Shown: positions 18,801 to 46,500, numbered from the stretch's first letter. The stretch is DNA of 64,000 nucleotides from Auanema rhodensis (GCA_964057225.1 OZ059899.1:7192001-7256000), one strand, 5' to 3'. The notes: generated by a model from the sequence alone, not told the origin. Made by a program: numbers and translations.

Positions 18801-21800
18801 AAGAGAAACTTTAATCAAATAAAGAAAATAAATGTTCGCAAAATGAAATAGAGAATATATAAAGAAACATTAAAACAGATCAGTAGTCCAAACAAATATC
18901 TAGATTTATCAAGCATATATGATAATCATAAAGCCGATATTATCATTTCATTTTAGTATGTATATGTATATACATATAAGCATATATATATATAAACATG
19001 AATTCATATGGCTGTGGATATATTTCCCATTTGAGCACAACAGGATCAATCTTACTAGTACTTCTTTACTTGCCTTCTGTTTTTTTTAAGATTGAGTATT
19101 TAATGTTGGAAAACAAAATAGAAGTGGTAACGTCCGATAAAAATGGGAATGCCTAGTAAATGCAAAAAAAAATCAAGAATAAGATGAGAACAAGAGAGGA
19201 AAAGGGAGAAAGGCGAATATTTCTGATACGGAAAGCTGAAAATGAAAGAAGAAACAAGGGGGGATTGATAGCCCAAGAGAGCTGTCACAAAAAAATGAAA
19301 GAAGAACTAGAAAACAGATTCGAAGCAGGTCACTTTTTGAAGCACTAATAACAAAAAAAACAGAAGCTAGATACACAGAGAAACATCACAAATGTAGAAG
19401 CTGCAACTCAAATATCATAAAAAATGTTTAAATAGTGAAGATAATGAAAGAAAAAAGAAAGAAGCCCATCCATACAAATCTCGATACTTTTCAGTACATA
19501 TTTTAGAATAACTTCATAATCAATAATATATATTGTATGTCTTGCTTATTCATATCATCTCGAAGTCTAATATACCTGTTTTCTATATATTAGGTTTAGA
19601 AAACTTACATATGGCGTAGCATAAACATCATGATAGAGCATTGTATCCACACACAAAGCGTTACAGATCATGGGTACAGACAACTCTGTAGCCGTCGAGC
19701 GTCTATCAGGCAAGTTTGAAGTCAAAGAAGGTGTGAAGTATGAAGCACTAACAGCTGACAACGTTGTGTCAAAAGTGGTGGCTACTGCACTGGCATTCGT
19801 TGGTAACAACTGAAGAAGCTGCGAAGATGATGATGGCAACTGCGCAGTGGCTGAATTAGATATGGACCACAAGTTGCCTGATACACCAGGAATTGGCAGG
19901 CCTGAACAGCTCACGCTGGAAGCAGACGAACCGGCAGAATCCGAGAAAGCGGCCGTTACGAATGGTAAAAACGACGTCACTTCTACTGTTGAGCTTGGAA
20001 TGTCAAATACGACACCCGCACTGAATAATTAGTAATTCAGAAAATATTCAGATAGTAATGATGTATTCCAGAAGATCGCTTGAGATTGTAATATGATCAG
20101 TTCGAATATCTGTTCACTTTTTGTGGACTATTAGAAGCAGCAAAAACCGATCAGCAACAGCAATGAACGGTAAATGTAGGTAGCTTGGAATGGAATACAG
20201 AATACAGTTGAATGGACACTCTTGAATCAGACTCAAAATAGTTCAAAAAGTATATTGCCACATACAAGATGCAATGAAGTAACTGAAGCTACAAGACAAA
20301 AATGTATAATTAGTTTTGATTCATCTGATATCATACCTGTCTGCTTTGGCCTCACAGATGTCGCACAAATAAGAATGAAAAACGTTAGAAAACGAATAGC
20401 AATTGTTTTGTGATTCCCAACCTCACGTGCGTATTAGTGATAGACGAACCCTTCTTAACTTATCGTGATAGAGTGTTCTATGTAGATACTCAACGACGTT
20501 AGAGTAGGTAAGTAGGATGGACGATAGATAGATATATTAATATAGTATTATACCAAATTATTGATAGAAAATGATTGAATATCGTCACTTCAAATAAAGA
20601 AAACGAATACACACTTCGACACAGACACAAGACAGCCAGCCGAAGAGGCTGGGACACTAGTAAAGAGCCGAAGAGAGACTTGTTGTTCTTATTCGCTCTG
20701 AAAGTGCGAACTGACAGAGACGCATGGCCACATTCACTAGTTCTATGTACGCCTATCATGCGCCTGAATAACCGAGTAGAGCGTTACTGAAGTCAGCCAG
20801 AAAGTTCGTAAAAATTCCTTGCAATTACCAAAATCCACCTTTCCTTACACATTACTTGATGAAATATCACTTTTCATTTGTTTTTTCATTTATCAATTTA
20901 AAAAAAAAGATAAATGGAGCATTTTCGCAAATATCAGAGTGCAGCAATTTTAGACTTGGAAACGTTGATCCTCTGAGATCCATATTTCAAACTGTGGAAA
21001 AATATTGACGAAAGACTTTCGCATAATGCAGACGCATATCGCATATAGTTGAAGAACGAGTAGTATTTATGCTACAAATATATTCAAAATCTCTCTATTA
21101 TCAGCTAGCTTAAGCGATATATTAATATAGTGATAGGTTAGAGCCTTGGCCGATAAAACAATAATACTTTGCATGTTAAGTTGATAATAAAATGATTTTA
21201 GTTGTAATAAAATCACAATTATTTTGTCAACATTCGATTTAGAATAATCCGACTGTGAACATATGAATACCTTAATTCCATCTATAATTATGCAAATACT
21301 AGAAAACTGTATAAGAAGTATTTATAGTTATTCATCATAATCAATAATTCTTTTATCGTAGATAATAGTGGTCAAAGTGTTTTTTCGTTTTATATTCAGT
21401 AGTAATGAAATACTAAAAATATTTAAAGGGTTCAAAAGCATCTTGTAAGTCTGATGAAAGAGGGGCAAGACCAGCATACAAAAAATATTTGATATTTTCT
21501 ATTCTGTACGTAAGCCATTGGCTCGCAACTGCTTTTACAAATCAAATTAACGAAAAGTGATAAGAACTCGGGTTTGTTGAGTACATGCTTTGAATAACCT
21601 TTTAAACATACATATACTTGACTATGTATTATATTATTTATATGTATACTTTGTAATTTAGTGATGATTTGATGGCACACAGGGTATTGAGTGGTAAAAT
21701 GAACCTCACATCCCACATGAACAGCCAAAAGATTCGAACTGAAACATATACAAAGAACAAGGAATTGAAGGTCAGCCTTGCGATGAAAGACTGGCAATTT

Positions 21801-22701
21801 CGATAGAGGAACACACAGCTGATGTTGCGATATGAAGAACAACTGCTCAATGCTGCAACCTTTGCGGAGGCTTAGATCAACAATGGATATACATATATAA
21901 AATGCATATTTTGTATTCCATCAGGTAAGCTTACAGCTATGTTTCCAGAAACTAGTTTAGACAAAAAGAACTTTGGAATAGTTTCTTTCAATTGATAAGA
22001 AGAGAAATCAAAAAATCAACTACAAAAGACAATTAATCCTAGAATTTGATATATCCGTAGAAATAGAAAAAGAACAAAACGAATAAAAATTGTAGCTTCT
22101 GAACCCAGAAAGAAAGAAAACTGAAAAAAAAGTGTGAGGAGATTGAATGAGCTAGAAGGAGAGGACGAAAGAAAGAGGGCAGGATACACAAGTAAGCAGG
22201 GCAAGGGCGCCATACCCTGTCCAAATTAGGCTATAGACTTTGTTCGAACGCTTGTAACGAACAACAACAAGAAAAACGTATACATGCTGAATGGGTGGAG
22301 AAAGGAAAGGAGAGTAGCTGTATGGCTGCTAGCTACTTGCTTGGGACTAAAAGAACAGAAGAAGAGAGTCTGATTGAACAGAGAACCCAAAAGAGAGCTG
22401 TAAGAGAAAAAAAGTAGAAGGAGATGGGGAGGGAAAGAAAGAGGAAAAAAGAAAGTGAGAGAGAGGGATGAAGCGAATGAGAGAAAGAAAAGACTATGGA
22501 AGAACAGAAGTAGTAAACAACAAGAACGGGCGGACGAACGGACGGATGGACGGACGACAACGCGGCCAAGAGGTTGCTTGAAAGAATGGAAGAACTAAGA
22601 GGCCAAAAAATGACCAAATACAATTTTCTTTAGATGGCCAAAACAAGCATGATGGATGGGGTTCAGACAACTGAACTTTTCGCACTCAGATTCAACTATA
22701 A

Positions 22702-22744
<43 letters not shown>

Positions 22745-25700
22745 TATATATATATATATAGACATAAGTATAGCTTTATTTTTTTTACTGCTAAATGCCG
22801 AATGTTATAAAAACTTGCATCATGCCACTCATCAACACTATTAGCAAGATCTTCTCAATTAATGCTCTGGAACTCGAATTAACAGAGATGATGGCGCTAA
22901 TTAGATACCTTACTTGCATATACAGAAAATCTGAGAAGCATAAGTAAGCTGCTATGAAAATAAGAGCGAGCAATTGAGAAGAGCTCAACGTGAAAAATAA
23001 TATCCTTCATCCTTCAGATGGACATTACACACAAAGCTGATGTTCACATTTAAGACATGAATTTATTGAAAATAGACATTACAAGTAAAAGCTGTGAATC
23101 GGTAGATAAAACAACTTATAAAAATTAATATGATATGATATAATGCCGAGTAAAATTGAGATTTAACTACAAAACAATTACATAGTAGAAAAAATGTTTC
23201 TCACACCTTCAGTTTTTTTTTCAAAATGTCAAGGAATAAAGTGGAATGGCCACATGTTCGTCGGGTTTGGACGAAGAATGGCTTTAAGTTTTCTGTCTCG
23301 AACGACAAAAAAGACAGAGCATTTCTTCTCTGAGCAAGATCAAGTGAAGAAAATTATACCTTCGGACAGGTGACCAACTTTTCTTCAACTATTAAAGCAA
23401 GATTAAAGACAAATTAGTGCTTTTTAAAAGAACTTCGAGTTTGGCATTACAACTGGTAGAGTTAAATGAGTGATGAAGTGTTCAGAAAAAAAAGAAAAGA
23501 AAAAGGAGATGAAAGAAAATGTTGTAGAATTAAAACGATGATTAGGAACGTTGAAAAGATGAGGATAAAGACAAGAAATGAAATAAAAGAAGAAAAAAAC
23601 TATTGAAACGTATGAGAAATAAAGAGAAGGAGAGAATAGTGAGGTTAAAAGAGATAAAGCAGAATGCTGTGAGACTGAACACGAACAAGCCAAAGATACG
23701 AGAATGCCGAGAAATGACGACGAAGACACAAAATGCCATACGCATCCTCTCAGAAAAAGCTGTTGGGGACAGACATTCGAGTGCGGAAGAAAGAGGAGAA
23801 AGAGAGGCAAAGGAATTAATAGTCACCGGTACAACGGGACGGGAACACACTCAAGAACAACTGCCTTGAAATAGCAAAGCTAGTTGATGGAGATGCGAAT
23901 AGAGAAAGAAAGCCAACAAAGTCAGTACTATACATGTTCGAATAAAGTGATTTAGTGTATGAAAATACAATAGAAACATTGAAAATACAGAAAAACGTTT
24001 CATTGTGATTGGATAAGGAGTAAGAAGATGAATATCCCAAATGTTTCATTGTTGGATAGATCTACGAGCAATCTAATACAAACACAAAAATTAGTCAGGA
24101 ACGAACACGAAAAATATAAAATATTTGCTATGCAGATCATAACGTAGTAATACTCAAAGTATTCCAACTTGAAGAAAAACAGAAACGACAATACAGTTTT
24201 ATGTGAAAGTTTTTTTCTTATTTCACGAAGTTTTGAAATGTATAAAAAGAAGTATTTCTACAATCTTTACTCAGTTAGTACTAGCTTTCACTTCTGTTCA
24301 TAGTCAAATGATGGTGCCAGCAGTGATAGTAAGTTCTATCCCATCACCTTCACAAAAGCTTTGAACAAGAGCTTTAAGGGTGCACGAATTACAGCAGAGT
24401 CAGTAGTATTATAACAGAAGAGTGATGATCAATGACTGAGCTGAGTGCTGAGAACCATTGCATATAACTTGTGACAAACGGCACGACAGATAAAAAGATC
24501 ACAGCAGATCTTACATCGGAAGCAAAATAGTTATTTTCGAATTTCATATAAGTGATTATGATGAAAATCGACATTTATATTTCAAAGGAAGGAAAAAAAT
24601 AGTTCTTTGAAAAAATATAAAAAGCAAAACATTTTGCAAATCAAAAGAAAAAAATCTGCTAAACAATTAAAATGACAAGACAGTGCTTCTATTTAAGCTT
24701 TCATGATAAATAAAAAAAAGGCAAATGTGGATAAGCATATCTATCCAAATTAGAAGCATCAACTGCGCTATACAATAATCAAAAAGAAAACCTTAAAAAC
24801 CAATAAATAGAAAAATATAAATTGAAAGAATTTTATATACTATTAGATATTTTTGTAGTTTTCATTACGAATTTCAAGTATAAAACGTTGTTAATATAAA
24901 TGGAAACAACACAGAGTGACTTCAATTTTTTCTTTCAAAAAAAAAAAATCAAATAGCAATACCGTGTTTAGTAAATTTAAAAGAATAAAAATGAATAGTA
25001 CTAGATCACAATGAAATTAAAACAAATGTAAAACCATAGCAAAAATTAAGATCTGTATTTTGGCTCATATGATTAAATGTATTCGTTTTAGCAAAATGTT
25101 AGTAATTGACTAGTACTAAAAGCAGTTCCAGAGCAAATATATATATATACATATATATATATACAGCAAGCTTTTTATTTTTTTGTCGAGCACAAACATT
25201 TAAATGCACATGCGTACCTTTATTTTTTTACCTTCTATCTAAGAGTTTTTTTTCGCTCTTTCTGCCCTTTTCTTTGTTGTCAGGTTCAGTCGATTGTGAA
25301 CGAGTAAGTCTAGATTTTGTTTACAAGTAAATACATTACTTGCAGGTGAGTTGATATATTTCTTTCCACATCCGCTTAATTAAAAGCTTCTCTCAAAAAT
25401 GTTTACAATCGTAGTAGGAACAGCAAAATCAACAAGTATTTGCAGTATATAGTTATCTTGATTTTAGCCTATTTTCTGAACGTAGGAGAATAGTTCATAC
25501 AATCGAGAGCAAAAGAAGAAAAGAGATAAGTAGGCGATCAAAGATACAGCTGAATGAGATAGATAGAAGGTTGTGACATTGAAAAAAAGAGCAGACGAGT
25601 GATGTTCTGTCAGTGATGATCAGTAAACTGGCCAACCATATAGTGGATCTGATAAAGCTAACGTTGAGAAAGCACAATCAGGCTGAAAAGGAGCAAGCGA

Positions 25701-28700
25701 TTGACTAATCGTGAAATGCTCTAGCAATAATGCAGATGAAGTACGTAGAACAATCGTTAGTCCGGTGCACTACAATCGCAAAAAACAAAACGAAAGGAAT
25801 CAATGGTATGTGTTTAGATTGTGTCTGGAACAGAAGAAAAGCTAGCAAATCAAACATAAAAGCAAGGCGTCCAGTAAGCACATCGAACGAAGTAAAGTTG
25901 CCGTTTTAATGATAACAAGTTGATAATATTTGAATATGAGAAGTGAACAGGGAGACGCTGAATACATACCAGTTATCATTAAATTTAAATAAAAGGTAGC
26001 GTTATTAACAAATATAATAGTTACATTTCAATAATATCATATTCCTCAAAACGTCAAACATCTTAAGAACATGATTACGGAAGACTAGCAACCTTCAAAA
26101 TCATGATAAGCATATTATCTAGCTTTACGTGAATTGGCAGATAGCAAGGCGTTCGAAGCATAGGTACTGGGTTGATACTGGTCAACTTATATATTTGTCG
26201 GTTTTATATTTAACTGATACGATCATAAAAACCTCCGGCCAAATTACAAAAAAAAAGACAAAGAATTTTTTTTCTTGTGCAAAATTTTATATTCAAATGG
26301 CTGAGAGATACCTTTAAATTGTATAGATATTTGTATACTTCCTATTTGTTATTATTGACAATTTTCAGTAGTATTTTCGCATAGAAATGAACTAAATGTG
26401 GATAAAAAGAGAGGGCATTCGCCTTCGGGTTTTGTGTACAAATAGGCCTCGTGTAGTCAGCGCGGTACATGACACTTGTCAACAACCGATAAACAATTCG
26501 AGTTCATTTTAACGAGCTTCCCAACTGCCTCCTGTCGTTCTAAGGGATAACAAAAATCCTCATTGAAAAACTAGAGACAAAACAAGGTCACAAATGGATT
26601 GATTCAAAACCCTTGCAAGATCGAAAATGCACATTTGATGATTCTTTCGTTCGATCATGATAATGAAACATGGATTAACCTAGAGAAACTCGTAAACAGA
26701 GAATGATTTAACATTCAATAACATCATATGCGTTACTTTCAAGTATAAAAAACTAGCTATAATCTTTCCTTGACAATTCGAATCAAGATCATGTAACTAT
26801 GGATATCATCATTATAGATTGTTCACCTTGTTTCAAATCAACAGACATGACAGTAAAATGCTTTTTTCTCTACCACGTATACGTTTTCCTTACTGAGGAC
26901 GACACCGACGTTGACGAAGCACGACAACGACATAGCCACCGTCCATAGCAGGCCGACACCGCTCCAAATGGACCGGTTTGTCCTCTTCTATGCGAATGGT
27001 TAACGTAATAGATGTGTTCCATCTCAAGCACACAACATATATGGCCTTGAAATGGTTCAGTCCAATGAAGGTAGGGTATGACAATCAGGACTTCAGGAAC
27101 TGCTAACTGCAGCGCCTCGAGGTATCGTAGCAAGACCACGAAAATGACTATGCGAATTGTATATACATAGACAACGCATTAGACATTTTTGTATCTTTCC
27201 GTCTCTTTCTTTTTTCCTCTCTTTCCACAGCAGATAGCATTCAATGGCAAATCCCAAAGTATTGCTTTTCGGTTGAGACGTAGAAAGCGTCTATTCACTT
27301 GTAATTCGTTTTTCTAGGACGTTCTTCAACGGAATACCGTACTAACAACTTAATATATACTGAACGATTCCGAGAGTGAAAATAATAAAAGAAGATATGG
27401 AAGAGAAAATGCAAGAACACTAGCGTACTGTGACAGTAACATATTGGCATAGTAAAGAGAAGACAGTAATCACAGAACTAAATGACTAAATGACTAACAA
27501 TGGACATGGTGTCAGAGTCATGCAGGAACAAAAGAGAAAAGAAAAAGATAATGAAAACACAAAAAAAAAGAACATCAAGAGTGAAAAAAACTGAATGTTT
27601 CCTTTTTTTTTACTTCAAAGTTCAAAAAAGTTCAAAATCTAAGGAAATCGGAATCGTAAATTCCATATATCCCACATATTTCAACACTATCTATCGTATT
27701 TGAAATTAGATTTCGTAAGTAGCGAACAAAACTATAATCTTCAGAAATATATTATTTCTCAATTATATATTAAGAAAATTGATTTGTTAAATTCTCAAAT
27801 AGTACAATAAGATCTTATTAGGTGATAGATGTTTTCAGTACTTCTGAACCGTTTAAAAAGATACGAACTGGATAAGAGAAATCAGTATATACGAAGAGCA
27901 TAGCACGATCAATATATAAAACATAATTTCATAAAGTATTATAATAAATATTGACTGATTGTCATTTATATAAAAATAAAAATAAAAATATATAAATATA
28001 TCTATATATATATAATCTCTCTCTCTATATATATATATATTATGAATGAGCAGCATTTTCACCTGCATGTTTTCAATAGGAAACAAAATTATAAGCTGTC
28101 AATGATATAAACTGAATATAATGTAAGCTAGCCAGATGGCGTATTAATGTATATACCAATAAAACGAGATATATGCAAAGATTGCGGCAATGAAGAAACT
28201 TTTTTTTTTCATCCTGCTTCCGATAGTATAGATCTACTTACAATCTACAGATCCATTGTTACTAACGTGAGGTTTGTTCAAAAATCATAAATTTATCTAG
28301 ACATCCTTTCATTGAAATTAAGTACTTAGCGTTGCCTTTCCTTCTCCACTCCATTAACTGGTGATGCTAAATGACATCGTTCATCATTCCTCGCAACCCC
28401 CCTCCATCGGTCCGGTTGGCTTCCGCCAATAGCAACCTTATGGAAACTTCCCTCATTATTCATTTTTTGATGTCTACGAATTTTCATTTATATTGAAAAC
28501 AAAGCAATTTTGTAAGACGAAATCAGTATTTTTTGACATAATTTCGCACTCAGAAAGCCCTCAAGTTTCAATCTATTTGATCAGCTAAGGATTCCAGATT
28601 AGGCTTAGATTAGGCTAGAGCAAATAAAAAAAATGTTATAAATCTCTCCTGATGTTATTATCTGGAATTTCACCACAACGTATGAACACGATTATATCGA

Positions 28701-31700
28701 GTAGTAATTCAGAGAACAGAAACGCATGGTAGTTACTGAACAACGATAGAGTCGATAGAGAGGTCAAGCAAGCCCTGGGTTTCGTCGCAACCGGGTCGAC
28801 GACCGAACGTCGATTATGCCCTCGACAAAACTGTCGCGATTGTAGTGGTAACGAAAACTGTTGTATAGCTTTGCGAACTTCTGAAGAGGTATAAGTGATT
28901 GAAGTTTAAATGAGGCAAGCAAGGCTGATGTTTAAGAGATATCACATAAATTGTATCTCGGGAGAGAGTTGAAGAAGTTAGGAAAATAGAGAAACCAGAC
29001 AGACTCAATAAAATACGAACGCCACTCCTACGTCGGGTTTTGCTCTGCATTTCGCAGTATTATCAATGGCAGAGAGAACGAACGATAGTTTCGGCATTCT
29101 GGATTTTTTTTTCTCTCGAACTGTTCGTTTGTAAGCAAAGGTTCGAGCTTACTAAGCGGACATTCGAGAATAGTTCAAAAACCGAAAATCAATATTGAGC
29201 ATTTCTGCAGCTAAGAAATAAGTTTAGATTTCTAAAGTTGAAAACTCATCACCTTACTCGAAGAGTTTTTTTACATTTAATTGCCGTAATTCAACGACAT
29301 TGTACCAAAAATATCAAGATCGAATAAATAGTCAGCAAAACATCAAATTATGATTGAAAATTCGATAACCATACTTACCAAAAATGCCTGCAGCAGCATT
29401 TCCAGAGACATAACTGGAATAGCTGTTGCTGCTCTGTCTTCGTTTTACTGAAAAACAGGTACTGTCTACGTATGCTACAGAACTGAAGCTATACGTACAG
29501 TCAGGATAATAATGCTGGAATCAGTTTGAATGACTTTTGCCAGCAGAACAGAAGACTCACATAGTTATGTTCAACGTTTCAAAATAGCCAATAAAATTAG
29601 TTCACCTCAGGCTTATTCAGAAAAGCTTCAAATTCAGGAGAAAAATATCTAATAGAAAACGTAGATATAGAGAATATAAGAGCGCCTGTACGCGGTGTAG
29701 TCTTGTAGAACACCACTGCCTCTGGCGGTCTGTTTACGTTTATGTCTGTGTTCACTGTTCTTTTTCTCTTAAACTTTCCCCCCTGCGAGTTCAGTTTTAT
29801 ATATGTATATGGTAAAGAAGCGACCTTGAGAAGGAACGCATAGTCAGCGATGGGCTGCAGCATAGTAGAGATGAACAGCTAGCCATCTTATGGGGCACAT
29901 ACCCAAAGCGCCTCCAAGGACATTGCAGGAGGAAAACGAGACGATAACTACGTATGTCGATTTAAGTTACTTCAGGGACAAGTCCTATTGGCTCAAGCAG
30001 AGACATGTATTTTTCGGATAGACGTAGATACAACATAAAGCAGTTAGAAGGATTAAAAGAAAAGTGGGGAACCGATCGTTGCCAGGCTACTCGGAAATTG
30101 ATATAATGAATAGTGCAATTAAGGTGAGCTAAAAAAAGATTTTATGAATTTTGCTGTGGGTCAAAATTGCAAGTATGAGAAGTTGGAAAATATGAAGTCG
30201 GTGAGAGATAAGAGACTGCTACTGGTCAGAGCAGCAAAAATTCAAAAAAGAAGTGAATACTATAGAGCTACACATTTTCAGTGGTTACGTCCACGTTTCA
30301 TACAAAAATGTATTGAATAGACCGTCGACATAATATGGCTCACGTTGAATTGTAAAATTTTCATAGAAAAAGGAAAAAGAGGCAAGCTGTTGGATAATAC
30401 TAAAAAGACAAAAGATGGGTTGAGACAGCTGAGAGCACCATTCCTGTCGGACAAAGACTTTGAACCATGCCCGACTAGAATGACAACGGACGCATATGTG
30501 AACGAAAAAGGCAAGTAAATTTTGCTGTCTCTCTCTATCTGTACTGTCATGCTGTCAAGTATGGAGAACTTCCAAAAAAAAAAATGCAACACTCATTTAC
30601 AAAGATATAAAGCCAAAATTAGAAATCTGTCAGTTAGAATGAAAAATATTAGAAATTGTAAATTGAAAAAAAGGAATATGAAATAGAAATGATAAAATAT
30701 ATATATTAGAATATACAAAGATGGAAGCTATATTTACAAAACAAAGAAAAAATATGAGCGTTAGTCGTATTAAGATATTTGCTTGAACTCGTAGATATAT
30801 TGAATTTTTTTTATTACCGATAACTATACTCAATTACGAAAAATTCGGACACGAATTTACGCATGTTGTTGTCGAGCGATACTTTAAAACTACAAACACA
30901 CTTTCGAAAAGCCCCCGTGGAATTTATCTTTTCACCACATTACATGTCCCAAAACGAGTTAAGCTATGTAACTCCAAAAACAGAAACTTCAACCGATTAC
31001 CCCCGAAAAATGTAAGGAGAGCGCACCTCTTCGACTTCGTCCTCGTCGCTAACATTCGTGGGAGGACTTAAGGTTCCATTGATTTCTTTGCTCTTTCCTG
31101 CTTTTCCACTGATCTGAAATATATAGTTGTTATATCATAGAGATTAAATAACCATCTTTTATAAATTACTTCGAGAAAATTCATTAAGATTACTACAAAA
31201 AAGTTCTAATTTTGAAAGCGTTGAAGTCTGACGTATGCTTCATATTTAATATTTTTTCAATTATTAATTTTTAGCAAAACGAAATAGCATGTACTTAAGA
31301 TATGGTTATATATATATAAAACATTATTTCACTCCATGATGACTTTGGTAATTATTCAATTATATTGTGAATGCTTTTTGAATTTCTCATACAATGAAGT
31401 GAAATATCATGAAACTAGAAAAAGATGAATGCAATACTATTGTCCTCTAGTTGATGTTTGCAAAAAATTGATTTTTTTTGTTAGCGAACAGACAACCGAA
31501 CATCGTTCTTGCGATGCTTCACTATATCCCATACCCTCTCTCTCTTTTTTTTCTTTCCTTACTCTCTTTCTTTTTCGTCATCTCTTTCATTCTCATTTCC
31601 TCTCCTTTGTAATTCTTTAAAATAAACAGCCTTAAGCAAAGACATATAAGTAGAAAAGCTCAACATATTTTTTATAAATTAAAATATTATTGCTGAATAT

Positions 31701-32072
31701 TTTATTTATACCTTTTTTCCTGTAGCTGTATTTAAATCAGATTCATTATCTGTTTTAGCACTCCCAATAACTGTTGGAGACATTTTATTAACGGAAGCGG
31801 GTAGCGTCCCCCCGGACGCTTCTCGCACCAAACACTAGAATATATGGTTATATATTTTATATTATAATCAAGTCAAGAAGATGAAAATGTTGCGATTTAA
31901 ATATCTTCGTGAATAGCACAAATGTATACAAAATACTTCACAGTAAAAGTACGAACACGAGCAGAAATGAAAGTATAGAAAACGGTAGAAGACAGTGAGA
32001 AAGTTTCATACGGGCTCACAAGATGAGGACGACACAGTAACATCCAACACATACATATCAAATATCAAGCAC

Positions 32073-32125
<53 letters not shown>

Positions 32126-35100
32126 TTAGAAAGGCCATAGCATCGAAAAGTAATAGTGGTATAAACACCTAGCATAACTTGAGGCAATAAACGGAAATTA
32201 GTACGCAGCTATATGTACGTCTAGAGGACGCGAACTTTAAGCTTAGCAGAATAGCTTGTATGTATGGCTTTTTTTGGCTCAGCAGCTCTGCTAGTCTGCC
32301 TAACTGGCTGCTGGAACTTCGAATGACAGATCAAAAGTCATGGCTTCCCATAGTTTGCTCACAGAAAGCGCGACGCTGCATTCGAGGCCCGAAAGAGAAA
32401 CCAATAATTTCGCATCGAACGACGATGATGACAACGAGAATGAGTAGAAGGTGTATAAAATGAGAAAGAGACATTGTAAGCAATGAAAAAAGATGCATTT
32501 TTAGCACGACAGAGAATAGGAGAACTCTTGAAGGTTGCAAAAGTTTGAGTGCTCCAATTTTTAAGAATTTAAATGGACGAGTCGGGCAACACAACACACG
32601 TAGATTGGAACAGGAATCGCGAACGTTAGGAACAAGCGATTGTATGGTTTGGAGATGATCTAGAGCAGTTAGTGAACGCAGATAGTACGAGTTTTTTTTT
32701 GAGAACAGCATGCAGAGAGTTTCAAATGAAGAGAGAGAAGGAGAGAGATACAAACATGGGATTTAATACGAGGTTTTCGGCCTGAGTTTAACATAGACTT
32801 TTGATGAATTTTACAACATTTCGGGGAATTAAAACAAAAACTGATTACTTTTTTGGTTACAACGATATGTTCAAAAAACCGAACGAGAAAAAGAGAATAC
32901 AACAAAAACCTAAATCATGGTATTGAAAATATTTTTTTATTGTTCTCAAATGAGCTACGCTAATGATAGTAGTCATTTTTTTATATAAAAATCTTAATTA
33001 AATGTTTTCGCAAAAGTATGAAATGTGTGCGAAACGAACTGAACGCATTCAACTCTGGTTCGAAGGACGGCCGCTGAGCAATACATGAGGAACCAGCAAC
33101 ATAGAGAAAGAAGGATCCAAGTGAAATAAACAGAAACTGAGCGAGAAATAGAGAAAGAACGCATATGAGAGAGTCCAAAAAGAACAAACATTCGTAGAGG
33201 GCGGAGTACGAGAATATGATAGAAGTGTGGTACTACGAAGGCCTAAGTTCATTCCGATTTTGAGCACCAAATGTTGCCAAGACTAGAAAAATTAAAGGCA
33301 TTTGTTGCAGACTTGCTATTCAGAATACTTCAAGAGGAAAGCTCAACCTACGATATAATCATCGTATTCAAGAAAAGAGGTTAAAATCCATCTACTGACT
33401 TACAAATTGAAAAATTAAATTAAATTATTTACAAAATCCAAAACCTCGGAAATATAAGTGAACAGATAGTAAAAATAGGAACATTTCATTTGCACTGCCA
33501 AAATTTGGATGACCGCAGACTTAGAGTGCCTGCTGCGGACGACAACTGAAAATCGAACACTTTGGCGCGATTCGTTTAAGCCCGAAGATGGATGCGCGTT
33601 AATCGAAGCAGCTCTTTTCTTGGCTAGCATCACATCCTTTCTTTTACTTAAATGGAACATACCAAAAACGATGTCAGTTTAGCAATGTTTTATACTTGGC
33701 TATAATAGAATTTTTGGAACAGGTTCCTGCTCTTTGGAACATATATAGAGGTTTGCTTGATCAGCAATTATATAATACGACATTAGACTTTTCAATTTGA
33801 TAGCTAAACACTTTTACCAATCACGTTTTTAAGTATACAAAGCAGAAACCGTGATAGGAAATAATACTGTGCCACGAAATTATAATTACTACATGATAAC
33901 CAACAATTATTATTCACAATAACTCAAAGGTAAAAAAGATATCGTATAAAAATTTAATACGGACTCAGATTTTGGGCATTTATAAAGATATTTTGCTATA
34001 TAGAGAATATAAATTAATTCACTTCAAATGTTTTCTATTCAATTAAAAAAAAGGAATTGTGAACACATATGACCCTGGAACAGAATATAGCTTATTTGAT
34101 CAGCTTAAAAAAGCGTATCGCTAGTTTTAAATCTTTCTCAATATGTTGTTATTTGTATTGAGACAATTATCATTCATAATTCAAACATCTAGTGTTCGGA
34201 ATAAAAGAGAACGGATTTGCGTAAAGTAGTTTTATGTTGCATTGAATAATGTTCAAATACAATTTAATACAATGAAATATAAATTTTACTCAAAATTATA
34301 AAACAATTACTTTAATAATAACTAATAATCTCCCTTTTTCATAATTAATAATAAAAAAAGTTTATCAGAAATAGCTACAGATTGGAGATTATCAATATAT
34401 TGAGCACTTGTTTATCATTTGTTGACTTCACGTCACTGCAATCAAACTTTTTCATGTTCACTGGGCGAGATTGACCTTGCGGGCAGTAGAACTAACATAT
34501 GCAAGTGAAAACTTGAAATGTATTCTTAGGCTTGGCTCGAGTTCGCTCGCCGCCCTCCTTGTGTCTCTTAGCTGAGCCACCGTTCAGGCGCTCTCCAGTC
34601 TCCGGGTGCCGGGCGGTGCCTGCCGTTCGCCCGTTCTGCTTCGGCACTATGACCTATGGCCGATGTTGGCGACGACGACGCCTGAGCATTCACGACAATA
34701 TCAGACAAACAACAAACAATGCAGAACGACGATGTTGATGATGTTTAGAAGAATTAAAAGAGAGGAATGAAGATAAGGACAATGAGAGTGCCTACGGCTA
34801 GAACCACAAGAGAAATGAAAATACGCCATATAAACCATCAAGCTAATTAGAATTAATCGATCAAAAATGGCTAAAACACAAAATATATGAACTTTCATAT
34901 TAATAGCATCATATTAATAACCAAAAACAAAGTATTTTTAATTCTAAATGCGAACTTTTAACAAGTAAAAAAGCATGCATTGCTAAAATAAAGAGTCAGA
35001 ATCAATACTTCAAGCTCTACTCAAATTAGAAGCAGTGCGAAATTTCCACTCAAAACGAATTACAAACAGAGAACGGAAACTGATACATAATGCTACTAAA

Positions 35101-38100
35101 CGTACTTCGGGCAAATGAAACCTTAAAAAATCAGTAAAACGGATTAGCAGACTTAAATAGTACGCATGTAATCGCATCTTCAAGAGTATCCTTATTTGAT
35201 TGAATGATAAAACTTGCAACATTGTCGAAATAATTCCGAGCATAGGAATAGAAAAACATAAATAACACAAAACTACTTGTAATATTTGCATATTGATGAA
35301 AAAAGCTTAGCAGTTATAGCAGAAGCCATAACTTCTCAGTACACACCGATAGCCTCATGGCATTAAATAAAGTTTAGATGATGTGAAATATATTCCTTAA
35401 TTTGATCGAAATCCACACATCTCGAAATTTTAGTGCATATCCAGGAGATGATATTAAAAGGCTACTACTTGAAGGGTTGTAAGGGTCAGTAGCTAGAGAG
35501 CACAACGGCCTAGCCAAAGATTAGAAAAGGAAAGACATCGGCGGGGTAGTAGAGAGCGTGAGTTAGAAGAATGATAATAGAAAGAACATGAGAGAAAAAG
35601 AGCGTAAGGAAGAAATGGAGATTAAAAAGCTATCTTCAATAAATAGGAATGTAGAAATTTCAGAAGGAGACAAAAAAATATGAAAAAACTGAAGAGCACA
35701 AGAGCACAACAAACTAGTCGAGGGGCTATATAAACTATTTCAGTACTATTAATTTGTTTTACAAACCCTCGAAAAGCCGTGAAGTACAACAATCAATCAA
35801 ATGTCAAGTTTGATAATTCAAAAGATATAAGCATGAAGGTCATACCATATACGTGTTCATAAGAGTTATTATAAAGAAAATATTCAAGATATTTTCAATA
35901 GAAAATGCAAAAAAAAAGTACAAAAAAATTAGCTGATAAAACCACTATGACAACGTGTTCATATGACTAATTTAGCTCTTTATGCAAACAGAAATAGACC
36001 CCAGCAACAACGCACTTTGCAATTCTGAACAAAATGACCTTGTGGTTAAGCTTTATTTTTGTCAATGATATAAAAAATAATATCAAACGATAAGCTTGCA
36101 GAGGTTAGAATACCTTTACTGTGAGATTGGTGTAATACGCAACATAAAGGTGTTATCAGGAAACAACCTAAACCAGTGGAATTGAGTATCGCTTTAGATA
36201 TTGTGAGAACATTATCAGTGCAATCAACTCAAAATTCGAAAAAGTTTAAACGATATATTCTATGGTTTGATATGGCTCAGTAAAGTGAATCGAATAAATC
36301 AATTCTGGCGCCTTTAGGAGAAGAATCAGTTTGCATTTAAAAAATTGAAAGCGTAGAGATTGAGCACATGCTCAAAACCAATTTTCGCAGCGCTGACTGA
36401 GGATCAAATGTCTGTACAAAGTAAAGGCGGAATACTCATGGTTAACTTCAGAAATGTCTCTGAATCAATTGAATAATCACTAATACGCATCTACAAACAG
36501 TTTCAATGGAAATCAATAGCATTATAAATCATAATATTTTAAAAGAAAATAAATGCAGTGCAGTCAATAAATGATCGTTACTCGTAAACCGAAAAATATT
36601 GAGCATTTTGCAACATTTTTTAATCATAAAAAAGCTCATAAAAGCAGAAAAAGAGGAAAACATAAGTGATAGCTCTTTGATTTCTTTCTATCAAAAAATG
36701 TATATGCGAAAATATCGATTTTTACGGACCAAAGCGTTCCGAAAATTAAAGATAATGAAGTGAAGAACAGAATGACTAGACAACAAAATATTTTTGAGAT
36801 CTTGAAATAGAAATAATAGAAAAAGATGATTAGAAATCATAACTATATAAATAAAATAGCCGGAATAATTGAACTTGCTTGGTGAATAGTATAAATCATG
36901 TAATTCAAATACGAATAAAATGGAATACCAGATCTTGCATTTGCAAACAAAGCGAAAGAGAGATAGAGAAAAGCATGTGAGAACAAGATGAACAATAGAA
37001 AACTTATGATAAAGCATTTAAAAATGAGATAACTGAAAGGAATTGAGGTAGTATAAATCTACAAACAAATATGAATTTGTAGTCTTCATAGAAAACAATT
37101 ATATAAGCTATACCAACAACCAGAGGAGTCGAATACACTATTCTTTTAAGAATAACGATGAGTAGCGTATGTCTTGATCATTTCTGACCTAGAATCCGTC
37201 AACGTTACAAGACACCGTGAAGATCGCCGTGGAAGGACAGGTCAAAATTGGTGTCAACGGTTCAGGAATAGATCGAAACCGCAAGTGAGGCTGGAGCTTG
37301 GCTCGTAAGCAATGGTAACCTTAAAATATTACCAAAATTTTGGATAAATTAATAATTGAAATATTCAAATTTATCCTAATAAAAACGCTAGATAAAATGT
37401 AGGAGCCCATTTTTGTTCAATGAAGTAAGTCCGTAATTCAGTTTTGTGCTCATATATCTCTTTATAAATGCCAGTTGGCTATCCTAAGTCTGATTACGAT
37501 TTATGATCCATCTAGCTGAGAATTGTCATTTATCTGCTCTCCACAGCCAAAATCACATTCACAGTATACCAAGGAATTTACATTATCCCCCCCCCTTTCT
37601 CGTTGACAAATTTTGAAAAGCGCCATAGACGAAATCCCAACACTGATTAAAATGCTAATCTTTTTTTTTTCTCGGTAAAATAATTCTATCGTAACTTGAA
37701 AATAAAAATCATCGACCAATTTGTTTGGAAGCGTTCATTGACATCTCATTTTCAAGAGAAAAAAGAAATTCAGGTAAAACGAAGATGATGAATTTAGAGT
37801 TGAACGACAGAGATTAAAACACAGTAAGATGAACATGATAATTAACGCTCAATGCGACTTATGAATTCTTATTTTATACAGAAAAAAAAGAGAGAGAGAG
37901 AGATCGAAACACAGAGATTATAGAATAAATCCAAATATGATTGAAATTAATAGAAAATTATCATACCCGACTTTTAAGCAGCAATAGCATTTGTTGTAAT
38001 TCTTTTATTTCTGTAATATTGTTGCGACCAATTCAGTCGGTGTTACAATTCAAAATGAAGCCATTTTTGCATTATTAGCGCGTTCTACGTGAACCCCACG

Positions 38101-39310
38101 CAAATTCAAGCATGAACATAATATGTTAATCATGTCATGGAATGCCATAATTGAGCTTCAATGGCATATTACGATTAAGATGAGTGATTTAACGATAGTA
38201 ATATATTTCAGGTTCATTAAAATACCAAAGTTGGTTAGGAAAGGCTTAAAGCCGGATTTTCATTCATCACCACACTCTCTGCCTACTTAATCTGATATCT
38301 GAATGCAGGTGGAAACTGCAGTTATTCGAGATAAGCTACCATAATACTAATCACATGTGCCAGCTGCAGGTGCTCACGCTTATACGTTGCTTTACCTTTT
38401 CGATAACTAGCATTCAACATGACCAAGCTATGAGCAACGCGGAGTATTGAAATATGAAGAAATAATAGGAAAGAAAAAGACAAGAAACTTCGCATAAATG
38501 TAGTTACACCACAATTATGATTATGACCACTAACTTCGCTTTTCAGTGAGCAGTTTTCAGAAAAGGAAGAGCTGAATCAGTGAATTAAATTAGAAGAAAA
38601 TTATAATTATAGTCACAAACTTGATTGCTTCAGAAAAAAGTTGCAGAACAAGGAAGAAATGAATAAAACAACTACAATCTTCACGAATACCACTAGCACA
38701 ACAAGAACGAAACGTACTTCGAGCAAACAGATAGATATAGAAGGTATCAGAGAAGTGTATTCAGAAACCAACAAGACGGTGAAAACAAAATTCTTACCTT
38801 AGATATAAAATCATGTACGGTTTCAGATGGTTTTAAAAGCCAACTTCCATTTTCGGAGAGAAGAGAATGTAGAAATAGTTGTTGAATATGAGCAGGATCA
38901 GGATAGTTTTTTGGAGCTGCAGAAGTGGCTAAATCTTCAATGTTGCGAAACATTGAAATCTTCTTGCTTGGAGAATCTTTGTTCATAGATAAGTTGATGC
39001 CATCAGTCGCATCAGACATGGGCAAAGAAGTCTGCTGGGTGATCTGGATCATGGGTGGTTCTTCACGTTCAAGACCTCGAACACATGGTGAATGGATCAT
39101 ATCAGGTTCCTTTTTCCGTTTCCGTCTTGAAGAGCCCACAGAACTCGGCCTATATATTGGAGTCGAAGTCAATGATGCTATCGATGTTGAGGTAGATGAG
39201 AGTTCAGCTAGCCGAGCTAGTAACTTGTCGACATCAAACCCAGTTCCTTTCGATGGCAAACCGCAATTCATATAGTTTATACTGCCTCTGCTGTTGGCGC
39301 CTGAAGACAT
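131..39310 (-). CDS. daf-12: Nuclear hormone receptor DAF-12, 5' part of a multi-exon gene (LBD exons lie beyond the left window edge)
   Basis: Spliced minus-strand exons give ...[15 protein letters not shown]|[18 protein letters not shown]...|[41 protein letters not shown]|[30 protein letters not shown]|[24 protein letters not shown]...[19 protein letters not shown]. This is near-identical to the C. elegans DAF-12 DBD (CESCKA P-box) and its flanks as I recall them. All junctions are GT-AG and phase-compatible. Confidence 0.95.
542..601 (-). CDS. daf-12: daf-12 hinge exon ([20 protein letters not shown])
   Basis: TTCTTCTAG acceptor, GTAGGT donor, 60 nt, phase 0/0; resembles C. elegans PQLISPPGAQ. 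Confidence 0.85.
1370..1474 (-). CDS. daf-12: daf-12 exon, DBD C-terminal extension ([24 protein letters not shown]...)
   Basis: TTGTAG acceptor, CAG|GTATAT donor, 105 nt; conserved GM-KKEWIL motif. Confidence 0.95.
1528..1617 (-). CDS. daf-12: daf-12 exon, second zinc finger
   Basis: [30 protein letters not shown]; TTTCAG acceptor, GTAAGT donor. Confidence 0.97.
1960..2082 (-). CDS. daf-12: daf-12 exon, first zinc finger
   Basis: [41 protein letters not shown]; TTTACAG acceptor, AAG|GTACGA donor. Confidence 0.97.
2156..2250 (-). CDS. daf-12: daf-12 exon N-terminal to the DBD ([32 protein letters not shown])
   Basis: TTTTCAG acceptor, GTGAGA donor, phase 1/0; aligns by eye to C. elegans GYHGSGVKLEESSGACGSPD. 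Confidence 0.9.
2929..2998 (-). CDS. daf-12: daf-12 first common exon ([23 protein letters not shown]), phase-0 acceptor
   Basis: TTTTTTCAG acceptor at 2999, G|GTGCGT donor; near-identical to C. elegans [18 protein letters not shown]. Confidence 0.93.
4614..4673 (-). CDS. Candidate alternative first exon of daf-12 ([20 protein letters not shown])
   Basis: GC-rich island, ATG at 4673, 20 codons, ACC|GTATGT phase-0 donor, 1.6 kb above the common exon. Confidence 0.4.
8163..8174. repeat. G12 homopolymer (others: G11 17043-17053, G10 44398-44407, C11 54097-54107)
   Basis: Read directly. Confidence 0.9.
9847..9894. repeat. (AG)24 microsatellite
   Basis: Perfect dinucleotide run read directly. 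Confidence 0.95.
19609..20020 (-). CDS. Candidate alternative 5' exon of daf-12 (Ser/Thr/Ala-rich, ~137 codons)
   Basis: Long open frame of higher GC in an AT-rich intron; TATTCAG acceptor at 20021, TAT|GTAAGT phase-0 donor. The start codon is unresolved. Confidence 0.5.
22704..22760. repeat. Interrupted (AT)n microsatellite
   Basis: Read directly. Confidence 0.95.
29379..29447 (-). CDS. Candidate alternative first exon of daf-12 ([11 protein letters not shown])
   Basis: TTTTTCAG acceptor at 29448, 36-nt leader, ATG at 29411, 11 codons, TTG|GTAAGT phase-0 donor. Confidence 0.5.
31027..31113 (-). CDS. daf-12: daf-12 upstream internal exon ([29 protein letters not shown]), not in the ORF track
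   Basis: ATTTCAG acceptor, GAG|GTGCGC donor, 87 nt open, phase 0/0. [11 protein letters not shown] resembles the LTPPNSDDD that precedes PQMSTP in C. elegans DAF-12. Confidence 0.8.
32077..32113. repeat. (TA)n microsatellite
   Basis: Read directly. Confidence 0.95.
38798..39310 (-). CDS. daf-12: Probable daf-12 first coding exon (171 aa Ser/Pro-rich N-terminus with basic RRKRKK cluster)
   Basis: ATG-initiated 513-nt frame ending AAG|GTAAGA (phase 0); TTTTCTCAG acceptor at 39407 upstream. No other downstream partner gene is visible on this strand, and the phase matches the 31113 exon. Confidence 0.7.
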
Positions 39311-42325: not shown

Positions 42326-43520
42326 AGCAACGAAATACTTAAGGGAGAGATCAGTAAATAGCGGGAGAAGTTCTGAATAATCTTTGAAAAAATATGTTTT
42401 TTTGGTTAAAAAAATTGGGATAGTTGATCATCGTAGTTGAGCTTCCTATGTTTGTGTCTGCTTGTCTGTCTATATGTGTGTCTATGTGTATGAAAGAGTA
42501 TGTATGTGTGTGACGGAAACCCTCGCAAAAGTGCAAAATCAATAAGACTGGTCGCACTTGCTGGCACTGGCGGGGCGCAATACACAGCCAGCACGTCGAC
42601 CACGAAACAGGGAGATGGAAAAAGAAAAAAGAGAGAGAAGAAGAAAAACATACGAGCGGAGTGCTGAAAAGTTAGATGGAGAGAGAGATAGAGAAAGGGA
42701 GAGAAAGAAATAAGAACAAAGACAGCATGAGGGGAAAGCGAGGGAGATAGAAGGAAAGAAGTGAAACATAAAGAGAGAAAAACGGAGCGGATCGGCGGCC
42801 AACAGAAGACTCACAGTCTCACACTAGATGGACATTGCAGAGCTAGAGCACGTTACGATTCAAATCTTAAATGTTTAAGGTATTTTCTGCTTAATCTGAT
42901 TTTGGCTGCAATTAACCCTGTTCAAACATCGCAGCATTCATTATACAACAGGTAGTTTCTTCATACGTAGCAAAATATAGCTTAAATAGTTTCAAACAAC
43001 GTAGCTGCGCGGAAAACGCTACGAAGTTTTCAATGAAGTTTTTCGTAGCCTGTTGTCTATTCTTAAACGCTCTCATCTCAGTTGTTTCCCTTTTGTGCTA
43101 AGGCTTATGTAAGGAACAACTACCTCACTTTCGAGAAGAAGTGGCTTGCAACAACCTATGGAATGATCTATCTCATCCACATCTTTCGTTTTACCTCTTC
43201 TCTATTTCTTCACTATCTTTCATATTCTCTCTCTTTCTCTCTCTCTTATTTCATTGTACTACTCTTTGCTATTTCAAATGGCCTAGCACTCTCTCTTTCA
43301 CTCTTACACACAATTTTATCTTCATTGGCTTATATACCGCTTATGATGTACCCCGGTACCAGAGTACTTACTCTCCGTTTAGTCCATTAGTCAAACCCCC
43401 TGTTACATACGTTATCCTTTTTTGATTACGAATGTCAAGCATTATATTATCTATAGAGATAATTTCCAGCAACGTTGTGACAAAAACTCTAGTACGCATA
43501 AATAAATAAATATAAATATA

Positions 43521-43551: not shown

Positions 43552-46500
43552 CTCGATATTAGAATTCGATATAAAGAGAGAAATAGAGTTATGATTACTA
43601 TACAAGCTGCTAATACATGAGCAATAGTTAGTCTTTCCGCTATCTTTCATATAAACCTCAACCAATTTCAATACATTCGTTGGTCTACCGATGCGTATAT
43701 AATACATAAGCTGTATCCCATTTTGATATAACAACTAATACTATTGTTTAAGGCACAGCTTTCAAGATTAAAACATTCTCATGAGGATGTAGACAAGAAA
43801 GATCTGATGAAGCAGCTTAACTCGGCAGAAAAAAGCATCATGAAAAGCATCAAGACTCATATTGCGTTAAAATGCCAAAATGAGTAAAATATTAGTGTCG
43901 ACAAGTGTATAAACTTCATACGTATGATCAGAAATCTCTGAGCGCATAATATTGATCTCGCAACATATCTGGCTCAGGTCTTAGTTCAAAAGCTGAGCAA
44001 TATGGTGTCAGTTGTAAAGAACTTTGACGTTGACATAGATTCGAAGTGCGCTTGCGTTGAGCCATCTTCTCTATGAAATAAAAGAAGTTACTAGAAATTG
44101 AATTACGATCGCCTTTCCTTCCAAACGACTAACCATAGTTTTTCCAAGTACGAGATACGTGTAACTTGTATAAAACTGAAGCAACTATTGTGCAATCTCA
44201 AACTACTAGCCAATGCAGAATTTTTGAAACAAATTGTCTCGCAAGGAAACAGTATCCCTATTTCATTATCCATTAATTTCCTCAAAATGCCGTCCAATCA
44301 GTAACGGATGCTTCATAGACCAAAAGCGAAATGACGAAATAATAAGCGGGATTATGAAGTATCGGATCAATGAGGTTGCTGTTATATTCATTAGTCAGGG
44401 GGGGGGGATAAAAAGCAGAACATGACAAGAAATGAGGACAGGCGCGACGACAAGTTTCAAGAAAAAACGACTTCAATTCTAAAGGTCAACCTTGAAAGGA
44501 CAAAAACTACCATACGTAATCGCAACATAATAATTCAATGGTTGAAACAGTTGAAAGTTTGCAATTGGTTGTGTAAACTTCAAAGGTAGTAATTAGCGCT
44601 AAAAAGGGATAGGCAATTAAAAACGACTTAAAACATCAAGGGAGTTGTTGAATCAAGCATTATTGATGAATTACTTATCAATTAGTTAGCAACATTAACA
44701 TTGATGCATAGTTGAATTATTATTACATACTTTTATCGGATAATTAAAATTGCATATCCTGACTGAATTATATATGCATATATGTGTATATATTACTATT
44801 TTTGTCGTTCGCTCTCAATAATGATAGGTCATCTGTGATAATATAATGTTGAAAGAAAGATTAGTAGTGAGGCAGATATGATCGTTCAGGGATTATCTAG
44901 TGTGCAATGCATATTCTTATATCAAAAACTCGAAATGAAAAGCCTTGAACACACATTTAGTAACACTGCTTACGGCGGTTGAGGGAAATAAAATCAGAAC
45001 AAAAATAAAATTATAAATGCTAAAAGATATTTTTTGAAATTTTTAAAAATTCAGGTAAATTCAGGAAAACAGAATGGACCTCTGGTTGTGGAAGCACTGA
45101 AACAGTTCTTCTCTTGGACCAAGTGCGTTGTTTCTCAAAATAATATGACTCTGATCCATAGATTATAATCCTGACTGAATACAATTAGTGTTCTCAATAA
45201 TACAATTTACTCTAAGTGAACGATACTACCTAGTTTACTGGCAATGCTTTTCACAAATCTTTTTGGAGTTTGCATAAAAATTTCATTAGAGAACTCGTAG
45301 GAAAACTGTTTCTTACAAAATATTGGATGGTTTTCAAAGTACTTTGATTCACAATAAATCTCCATAATACTTTTTTTTATAGCGTCCGTCGAAAATGAAG
45401 TAAAAATCAAATTGCAAGCCATCTCCTCACAGGAGTTTAGAGGGATAAGAAAGATGTATCATTCATAAGGCGATTATATAGGGGTTCAAGAAGATTTCAC
45501 ATTCATTATATTCTTGGAACTTGTTACATGTTTGATCTGCCTACTATGGATAATGGATAAATCTCTGGATAAAGAATGTGCAATAGTTCATACGACGAAA
45601 AAAACCAGGATAGCTTCTTTTATACAATTTGTATTCCTTTGTAATACTGGAAAGGTGATATGAGTCGGCGAAATTTGAAAAACGGATCGACAGAAATGAA
45701 AAGAGACGCAGCGGTAAAAGAAAATTAAATGTTGGAAATAAACTGGAGAGCAGAAAAGAGAAGAACAATCATCTCGTAGTCGTGAGAGAAGTATCTACCA
45801 GCCTACATACGTATTTGGGCTCATTTTGCATTGGTCTAAAAAATAACCAAACAGACTTTAAAATGTAATGATTTTTAAAAACATCCATAATTTTGTTTGA
45901 ATTATAGAAATTAAATCTTTAAAATGTTATGCTATAGCACAGGATTGGGTAGAATATCTTTGTACTATGAAAAGAGACATCAGAGAACAGGATAGAGAAG
46001 ATATGAAATGTTACTACATGAAGAAAAATGTGATGAGAAGAAACTGATTTTCAAACGGAATCTGAAGAAAAGAGGCCATCTGCAGGAATAGAAAACCATC
46101 GATGGCAGACGTCGTAGACCTCCCGGGTGGTAGTCTGGAACAATGGCTACGTAAGCCATACACAAAATCGAAGACTTTGGCAGATCGGAAATTAGAAAGC
46201 CGACAATGGCCAATAGTTACATACATATAAACTATGGAATGATTGAGAATGGTTTCAAACTTCTAAACAGAATGTGGACAATTCCTAAGAAACTGTGTCG
46301 CAAAGGACATAGACTATGCACCTGTCCTTGCCAATCAGCGCGCGTTTTCTGGGCCGATTGATTTGAAGTAACATTGCAAGACATAATATTTCATGAGAGA
46401 GCCAACTATTTGACCTTATAAAAAACATGAAAGTTTGCATATGCATGTGCTTATAAGATATATACAATCCCCGTGCTTCAAGTCCAATTCTGAGACAGCG

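Follow-up and report, generated by a model that had tools for sequence, protein, structure and literature searches.

The minus strand of the 64,000-nucleotide (nt) window analyzed here, from the nematode Auanema rhodensis (GCA_964057225.1, OZ059899.1:7192001-7256000), probably carries the daf-12 orthologue of a rhabditid with a long 5' region, and the 5' two-thirds of the gene lie within the window. Dauer entry and exit are controlled by DAF-12, the steroid switch that is also a drug target in parasitic nematodes. In Auanema, the module formed by dafachronic acid (DA) and DAF-12 sets female versus hermaphrodite fate (PMC11796466). A preliminary description of this DNA proposed that the three best-supported DAF-12 N-termini each encode an LxxLL motif, or nuclear-receptor (NR) box. 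The three pentamers exist exactly where they had been placed, the reverse complement reading LHSLL, LEMLL, and LLQLL (Table 1). Our preferred reading, to which we assign a probability of roughly 0.6, is that LHSLL lies in a conserved coding exon, that LEMLL and LLQLL would be by-products of translation, and that the three pentamers do not belong to one class.

A pattern scan located the two C4 zinc-finger halves of the DNA-binding domain at 1960-2082 and 1528-1617 on the minus strand. Pfam zf-C4 matched 1960-2085 with E = 6.9e-13, which identifies a C4 DNA-binding domain; a Pfam search of all pieces returned zf-C4 on this domain alone and no other family. The hinge portion reaches the left edge of the window and the ligand-binding domain lies off-window, so the whole stretch between 2.2 kb and about 39.4 kb lies 5' of the DNA-binding domain. 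The exon with its acceptor at 2998 and the hinge are presumably similar to those of Caenorhabditis elegans DAF-12. The closest relative found is Auanema sp. JU1783, and the locus used for comparison (L001, part of contig CALQYR020007501.1) is the region around CAI4233120.1, which reaches down to about window position 30.5 kb. It is collinear with the window from an Elongin-A/Med26-like gene (47.2-48.9 kb) to that point, and the syntenic JU1783 gene shows zf-C4 and a weak Hormone_recep match. Assignment to daf-12, a receptor gene of the NR1J type, over its paralogues nhr-8 and nhr-48 is taken as probable.

The distal first coding exon (exon 1) aligns over its full length with CAI4233120.1, an unnamed JU1783 product, at 41% amino acid identity and with whole-codon indels. 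The alignment runs in a single frame only (E = 8e-32 by tblastn and 1.2e-22 by phmmer), at a DNA identity of 68%. The start codon and the AAG/GTAAG donor are common to both species, and the similarity stops right after the donor. In JU1783 the orthologous exon sits on the same strand as the zf-C4/Hormone_recep gene, 760 bp upstream of it, and the 201-amino-acid (aa) "protein" annotated there is exon 1 read through the conserved GTAAG donor into unconserved sequence. Read-through past the donor adds 16 codons in the window versus 31 in JU1783, with no similarity between the two extensions, and an exact look-up of the window's 187-aa read-through open reading frame (ORF) in protein records found no entry. 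Exons were searched singly, in the case of exon 1 with phmmer against 1.8 billion representative proteins, among which CAI4233120.1 was its sole relative. Pfam assigned exon 1 to no family, and its profile in the word-index protein search retrieved CAI4233120.1 alone. A second protein match to exon 1, a non-nematode and repetitive sequence with 40 residues aligned, was dismissed as a relative. Look-alikes in the ESM Atlas (scores ≤0.88) were disordered transcription-factor fragments and were not used as evidence. An AlphaFold2 model from the two-sequence alignment has a mean predicted local distance difference test (pLDDT) score of 40 and assigns no secondary structure with confidence to residues 147-151; exon 1 is probably a disordered A/B-domain extension.

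The JU1783 counterpart of the LHSLL block, D-L-L-L-H-S-L-I-A-D-N-G, reads LHSLI, and its Ser and Gly codons differ by synonymous changes. The sole orthologue available thus lacks strict LxxLL but keeps the relaxed pattern L[KRH]x[AIL][IL]; by chance about 0.1 such matches are expected per 171 residues on the minus strand. The Phi-L-H-S-L-[L/I] patch (Phi, hydrophobic residue) would most likely be a protein-interaction element of the long isoform or an activation element of the AF-1 (activation function 1) type, and we regard LHSLL as a fair candidate interaction motif, no more. Elsewhere in exon 1, a second conserved leucine patch, V-D-x-L-L-x-R-L-A-x-L, occupies residues 27-37 (39223-39233 region) and is followed by an invariant TSTSI. 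Residues 62-66 form a conserved basic RRKRK, likely a nuclear localization signal.

The donors at 38798, 37967, 31027, 29379, and 19609 are all phase 0, as are the acceptors at 31113 and 2998, so that a layout of interchangeable N-terminal exons is frame-consistent; phase bookkeeping allows several first exons to join one common exon in frame. The 2998 common exon in turn joins the 2250 exon (phase-1 acceptor) in frame and leads into the DNA-binding domain. Exon 1b is kept in JU1783 as MLLLLKTR with its donor conserved in the alignment, and the annotated JU1783 daf-12 model (800 aa) starts in this exon at L001:11364. In the window it encodes no strict LxxLL; its MLLLL is a Phi-x-x-L-L string. 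The 31.0-kb exon has 85% DNA identity with JU1783, is bounded exactly by a conserved acceptor and donor, and contains one 3-nt indel. Coordinates, phases, and chance rates, together with the conservation and synteny of exons 1, 1b, and 31.0, are shown by the analysis. In the arrangement that we propose, at least two promoters would give alternative first exons of 171 codons (exon 1) and 8 codons (exon 1b), both phase 0. These would feed the 29-codon exon at 31.0 kb, which would be followed by a 28-kb intron and the 2998 common exon. The splicing of exon 1 into daf-12 is our inference.

Table 1. Features of the daf-12 5' region in the window. A slash marks an exon boundary; splice-site and codon sequences are given on the minus strand.
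Feature	Position	Strand	Description
Exon 1, distal first coding exon	38798-39310	-	ATG at 39310; 171 codons; donor AAG/gtaaga, phase 0
LHSLL pentamer	38858-38872	-	Exon-1 residues 147-151; C-terminal conserved block L-[F/L]-L-H-S-L-[L/I]
Conserved non-coding module, 100 nt	38275-38374		89% identical to JU1783; about 300 bp upstream of exon 1b
Exon 1b, alternative first exon	37967-37990	-	ATG plus 7 codons, MLLLLKSR; donor CGG/gtatga, phase 0
Internal exon, 87 nt, 29 codons	31027-31113	-	Phase 0 at both ends; conserved in JU1783
Candidate 69-nt exon	29379-29447	-	Acceptor tttttcag/; 36-nt leader; ATG at 29411; 11 codons; donor TTG/gtaagt
LEMLL pentamer	29391-29405	-	Residues 3-7 from the first ATG
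GC-rich island, 153-codon stop-free frame	19609-20028	-	44-53% GC; donor TAT/gtaagttt at 19609
LLQLL pentamer	19804-19818	-	Codons ctt ctt cag (19810-19818) are the best local 3' splice-site match
Common exon	2929-2998	-	Acceptor ttcttttttcag/, phase 0; 23 residues; phase-1 donor G/gtgcgt
Exon preceding the DNA-binding domain	2156-2250	-	Phase-1 acceptor; phase-0 donor
DNA-binding-domain exon 1, first zinc finger	1960-2082	-	Pattern scan; Pfam zf-C4
DNA-binding-domain exon 2, second zinc finger	1528-1617	-	Pattern scan
Conserved blocks	42434-42692, 46284-46383, 34572-34794, 33523-33639		JU1783 alignment
Conserved blocks	33026-33299, 32251-32407, 31398-31592		JU1783 alignment

The 11-codon exon of the preliminary description is present at 29.4 kb as a sequence pattern, with a tttttcag acceptor, an ATG at 29411, and gtaagt at 29378, and it has the highest combined acceptor and donor score in a crude splice scan. 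Splicing from an upstream phase-0 donor would make TAA its first codon, so it can be coding solely as a first exon in its own right (a trans-spliced one, for instance), in which case 11 residues would be joined to the 2998 exon. LEMLL is lost if translation starts at the second ATG, at 29399, whose A-rich context is better. The codon score is uninformative for this exon. Among minus-strand micro-frames made of an ATG, 5-30 codons, and GTRAG, LxxLL occurs in 1 of 27, and that one is the 29.4-kb exon itself. Apart from a 14-nt match, neither the 29.4-kb nor the 19.6-kb exon was found in the JU1783 locus L001, which ends at about window 30.5 kb, some 1.1 kb before the 29.4-kb exon would be reached. 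The match is an identity (ggaaatgctgctgc) between 29396-29409, spanning the second ATG of the micro-exon, and L001 11417-11430, in JU1783 exon 1b, and both copies encode E-M-L-L. An ancient duplication of the exon could account for it, as could chance, the string being CTG-rich. LEMLL in this candidate micro-exon is most likely a by-product of translating a T/C-rich and Leu-rich strand.

LLQLL has no in-frame ATG upstream of it, so the 19.6-20.0 kb stretch is not a motif-containing N-terminus; an in-frame ATG first appears 42 codons downstream of the pentamer, and as a first exon the stretch would encode 21 residues without LLQLL. The pentamer would be translated only within an internal exon that is entered in phase 0 through a weak upstream acceptor. 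Three phase-0 AG sites are available for such an exon, and the best of them is ctt-ctt-cag, the LLQ codons themselves. Splicing there would start the exon at 19809 and the protein at LLPTNAS, and LLQLL would be lost. The island scores 0.04 bits/codon on the minus strand versus 0.18-0.21 on the plus strand, compared with 0.15-0.5 for true exons, under a codon model that was trained on 753 codons, mostly from one charged protein, and that separates known exons from shifted frames but is ambiguous for the island, leaning slightly to the plus strand. Word-index protein searches with the minus and plus frames of the island found no homologue, and Pfam found no family. Minus-strand stop-free frames of 117-162 codons are common in the 28-kb intron, which contains 17 other minus-strand stop-free stretches of at least 100 codons. 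GC islands are likewise numerous in the intron, and wherever L001 covers them their conservation extends to all frames, which marks them as non-coding. Neither the length of the open frame nor its GC content therefore speaks for an exon. LLQLL, which has no upstream start codon and overlaps a probable splice acceptor, is probably untranslated; we infer its non-use from these two features. On the plus strand of the same island, a frame runs from an ATG that follows ttacag to a TAG (19670-20032), with an acidic, protein-like translation and a single TGA at 19811-19813.

The preliminary description had itself cautioned that the pattern was post hoc and that LxxLL is common in Leu-rich text, and both cautions were borne out. 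The minus strand, T/C-rich, translates to 12.8% Leu and carries 0.0024-0.0028 LxxLL per position, and 4 of the 17 other intronic stretches have LxxLL. When the residues of each piece are shuffled, one or more LxxLL arise with a probability of 0.11, 0.17, and 0.13 for the LHSLL, LEMLL, and LLQLL pieces, respectively; against the strand background the values are approximately 0.3, 0.02, and 0.25. By either route the joint chance is about 1e-3, a figure that applies to exons specified in advance. Here the exon set was picked post hoc, leaving out a fourth conserved N-terminal exon (1b) that has no motif. Of the N-termini called well supported, exon 1 stands on conservation and synteny and the 19.6-20.0 kb stretch falls as a motif-bearing N-terminus. 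The claim that each N-terminus encodes an NR box is not supported, given the conserved MLLLLKSR without LxxLL and the lack of an ATG upstream of LLQLL; that exon 1 encodes a conserved motif resembling an NR box is retained as a hypothesis. An orthologous exon is available for exon 1 only, and it has LHSLI in place of strict LxxLL. We concluded that a docking motif shared across isoforms is mostly a post-hoc coincidence.

The resemblance of the pentamers to coactivator motifs that bind DAF-12 is also uneven. The ligand-binding domains of Brugia and Haemonchus DAF-12 take LxxLL peptides in a ligand-dependent manner, with a coactivator consensus of [F/H]x[L/I/T/M]L[K/R/H]x[A/I/L][I/L] (10.64898/2026.03.11.711005). 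The same preprint stresses a hydrophobic residue at -1 and K/R/H at +2, and it describes the SRC1-1 LVQLL type as a poor DAF-12 binder and the SRC2-2 type, with His at +2, as a good one. All three pentamers have the L-x-x-L-L core in the minus-strand translation, and the full consensus is matched by none of them, including exon 1 of either species. JU1783 L-LHSLI agrees at five of the six specified positions, missing -3, and window F-LHSLL at four of the six (those from +1 to +5). LEMLL and LLQLL match no flank position of the consensus, both lacking a hydrophobic -1 and a basic +2. S-LEMLL, with Ser at -1, an acidic Glu at +2, and no N-terminal flank, is a poor fit, and the flanks of Q-LLQLL-P resemble the SRC1-1 LVQLL type followed by a proline. 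Resemblance to the DAF-12 coactivator consensus is thus confined to the exon-1 motif. This motif is one modest lead that appears worth a peptide-binding test.

If all three pentamers were translated as isoform-specific NR boxes, docking in the activation function 2 (AF-2) groove or competition with coactivators could tune the DA response. The pentamers do exist, phase-0 ends make every candidate exon compatible with the 2998 acceptor, and the joint chance would be low had the exons been pre-specified. Ligand-dependent LxxLL binding by DAF-12 ligand-binding domains (10.64898/2026.03.11.711005) and the precedent of receptor self-contact through an N-terminal motif in FXR (PMC13562826) would fit as well. 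We nevertheless consider this reading extremely unlikely, in view of the missing start codon and acceptor overlap of LLQLL, the unsuitable -1 and +2 residues of LEMLL and LLQLL, the motif-free N-terminus of exon 1b, the lack of strict LxxLL in the sole orthologue available, and the post-hoc selection of the pattern. A narrower version, in which the exon-1 patch (Phi-LHSL-L/I) alone is functional and docks in an AF-2 groove, either that of DAF-12 itself (N/C contact) or that of a different nuclear receptor, would give the long isoform a distinct ligand response. It draws on the identical L-H-S-L at homologous positions with synonymous codon differences, on the consensus fit with His at +2 as in SRC2-2, and on the low chance expectation of the relaxed pattern, and it is weakened by the low-confidence AlphaFold2 model with no confident helix at the motif, by the absence of [F/H] at -3 in both species, by a motif block whose conservation does not exceed that of the exon's N-terminal and basic blocks, and by the lack of a detectable counterpart of exon 1 beyond the clade. 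On balance it seems unlikely. The most specific form of the idea appears highly unlikely: that exon 1 is a clade-specific 171-residue A/B extension whose Phi-L-H-S-L-[L/I] helix docks its own AF-2 or displaces coactivators and so alters the DA response of the distal isoform.

LHSLL would fall outside DAF-12 altogether if exon 1 were a separate small gene, or part of one, between the Elongin-A-like gene and daf-12. The JU1783 annotation keeps the 201-aa product apart and starts daf-12 at exon 1b, and no database protein joins the exon-1 sequence to the DNA-binding domain. That product, however, simply results from reading through the conserved GTAAG donor, the interval from exon 1 to exon 1b contains no further conserved coding exon, and strand, phase, and conserved position all suit daf-12; long DAF-12 isoforms from a distal promoter also occur in Strongyloides stercoralis (947 aa versus 722-752 aa; PMC3493385). 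We therefore rate a separate gene as fairly unlikely. Another alternative concerns the island at 19.6-20.0 kb, which might be a conserved regulatory element, or a plus-strand small gene or pseudogene nested in the daf-12 intron. The plus frame, from its ATG to its TAG, has a codon score above that of the minus frame, and the intronic GC islands covered by L001 are conserved non-coding elements. An in-frame TGA nonetheless interrupts the plus frame, no homologue turned up for either strand, the minus frame runs without a stop to a consensus donor, and the narrow training set of the codon model limits the comparison of strands. We lean against this alternative but consider it a tangible possibility. 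The reading that we prefer, with LHSLL alone in a conserved coding exon, has several observations weighing against it. LxxLL in an 11-codon frame is uncommon by chance (about 2-4%) and is the least trivial of the three coincidences; when MLLLL is counted, a Phi-x-x-L-L string occurs in all four candidate N-termini, so that a genuine common feature keeps some probability. No GC island of the intron is longer than the one at 19.6-20.0 kb, and its minus-strand frame stays open as far as a perfect donor, as would be expected of an exon. Finally, the JU1783 annotation makes the exon-1 orthologue a 201-aa gene of its own outside daf-12.

Non-coding blocks spread across window 30.9-46.4 kb are 75-90% identical to JU1783, collinear, and mostly GC-rich; coding exon 1, at 68% DNA identity, is far less similar. 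These blocks look like a large conserved regulatory landscape upstream of daf-12 and inside its intron 1. The 38275-38374 module is packed with CANNTG (E-box-like) sites and has one GATA-like site; it matches JU1783 in all three frames, and its conservation is thus at the DNA level rather than coding. It is probably the proximal promoter or an enhancer of the short isoform. The Elongin-A/Med26-domain gene directly upstream of the daf-12 region occupies 47214-48933 on the minus strand, and it is syntenic in JU1783 with 55-86% protein identity. Rfam and tRNA scans gave no matches. Microsatellites of the (GA)n/(CT)n type at 9.8-9.9, 7.44-7.47, 4.2-4.3, and 2.86-2.89 kb produce extended "ORFs" of Leu and Ser, and they also match a repeat of similar type in the JU1783 locus.

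The evidence leaves the docking idea with a single candidate motif, located in a single conserved exon. If real, an intramolecular brake specific to one isoform, or a competitor for coactivators, would add a new layer of control, and such a modifier of DAF-12 would be of interest in an animal in which DA and DAF-12 set the sexual morph (PMC11796466). A literature search found no paper that connects DAF-12 with an N-terminal LxxLL. What stands more firmly is the map of the daf-12 5' region, checked for reading frame, with two conserved first exons, a 29-codon exon, a 28-kb intron with conserved non-coding blocks, and the 2998 common exon.

The androgen receptor uses an FxxLF motif for its N/C interaction, and FXR and DAF-12 belong to the same NR1 subfamily. 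The N-terminal SxxLF of FXR contacts its own ligand-binding domain, and the androgen, estrogen, and mineralocorticoid receptors are named with it for roles of the N-terminal domain (PMC13562826). Like these FxxLF and SxxLF elements, the exon-1 motif is a short hydrophobic motif in a predicted disordered N-terminal domain and might contact the receptor's own ligand-binding domain; unlike them, it reads L-H-S-L-[L/I] and occurs in one isoform-specific exon only. Compared with the NR boxes of DAF-12-binding coactivators (LxxLL of SRC/PGC1 and S. stercoralis DIP-1), it shares L at +1, H at +2, L at +4, L/I at +5, and a hydrophobic -1, but neither species has F/H at -3, the window has Phe at -1, and the pentamers here lie within the receptor gene itself. 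The gene layout as read here, with alternative promoters, is the known daf-12 pattern. N-terminal DAF-12 variants produced from alternative promoters have been described in S. stercoralis and C. elegans, and S. stercoralis daf-12 has seven transcripts (Ss-daf-12a-g) arising from multiple promoters, with proteins of 722, 752, and 947 aa (PMC3493385). In contrast to these published arrays, the isoforms proposed here are deduced from sequence, phase, and conservation, and exon 1 shows no detectable similarity beyond the Auanema clade. As in C. elegans and S. stercoralis, several first exons precede a common exon and the variation is confined upstream of the DNA-binding domain, and, as in S. stercoralis, one long N-terminus is accompanied by one or more short ones (PMC3493385).

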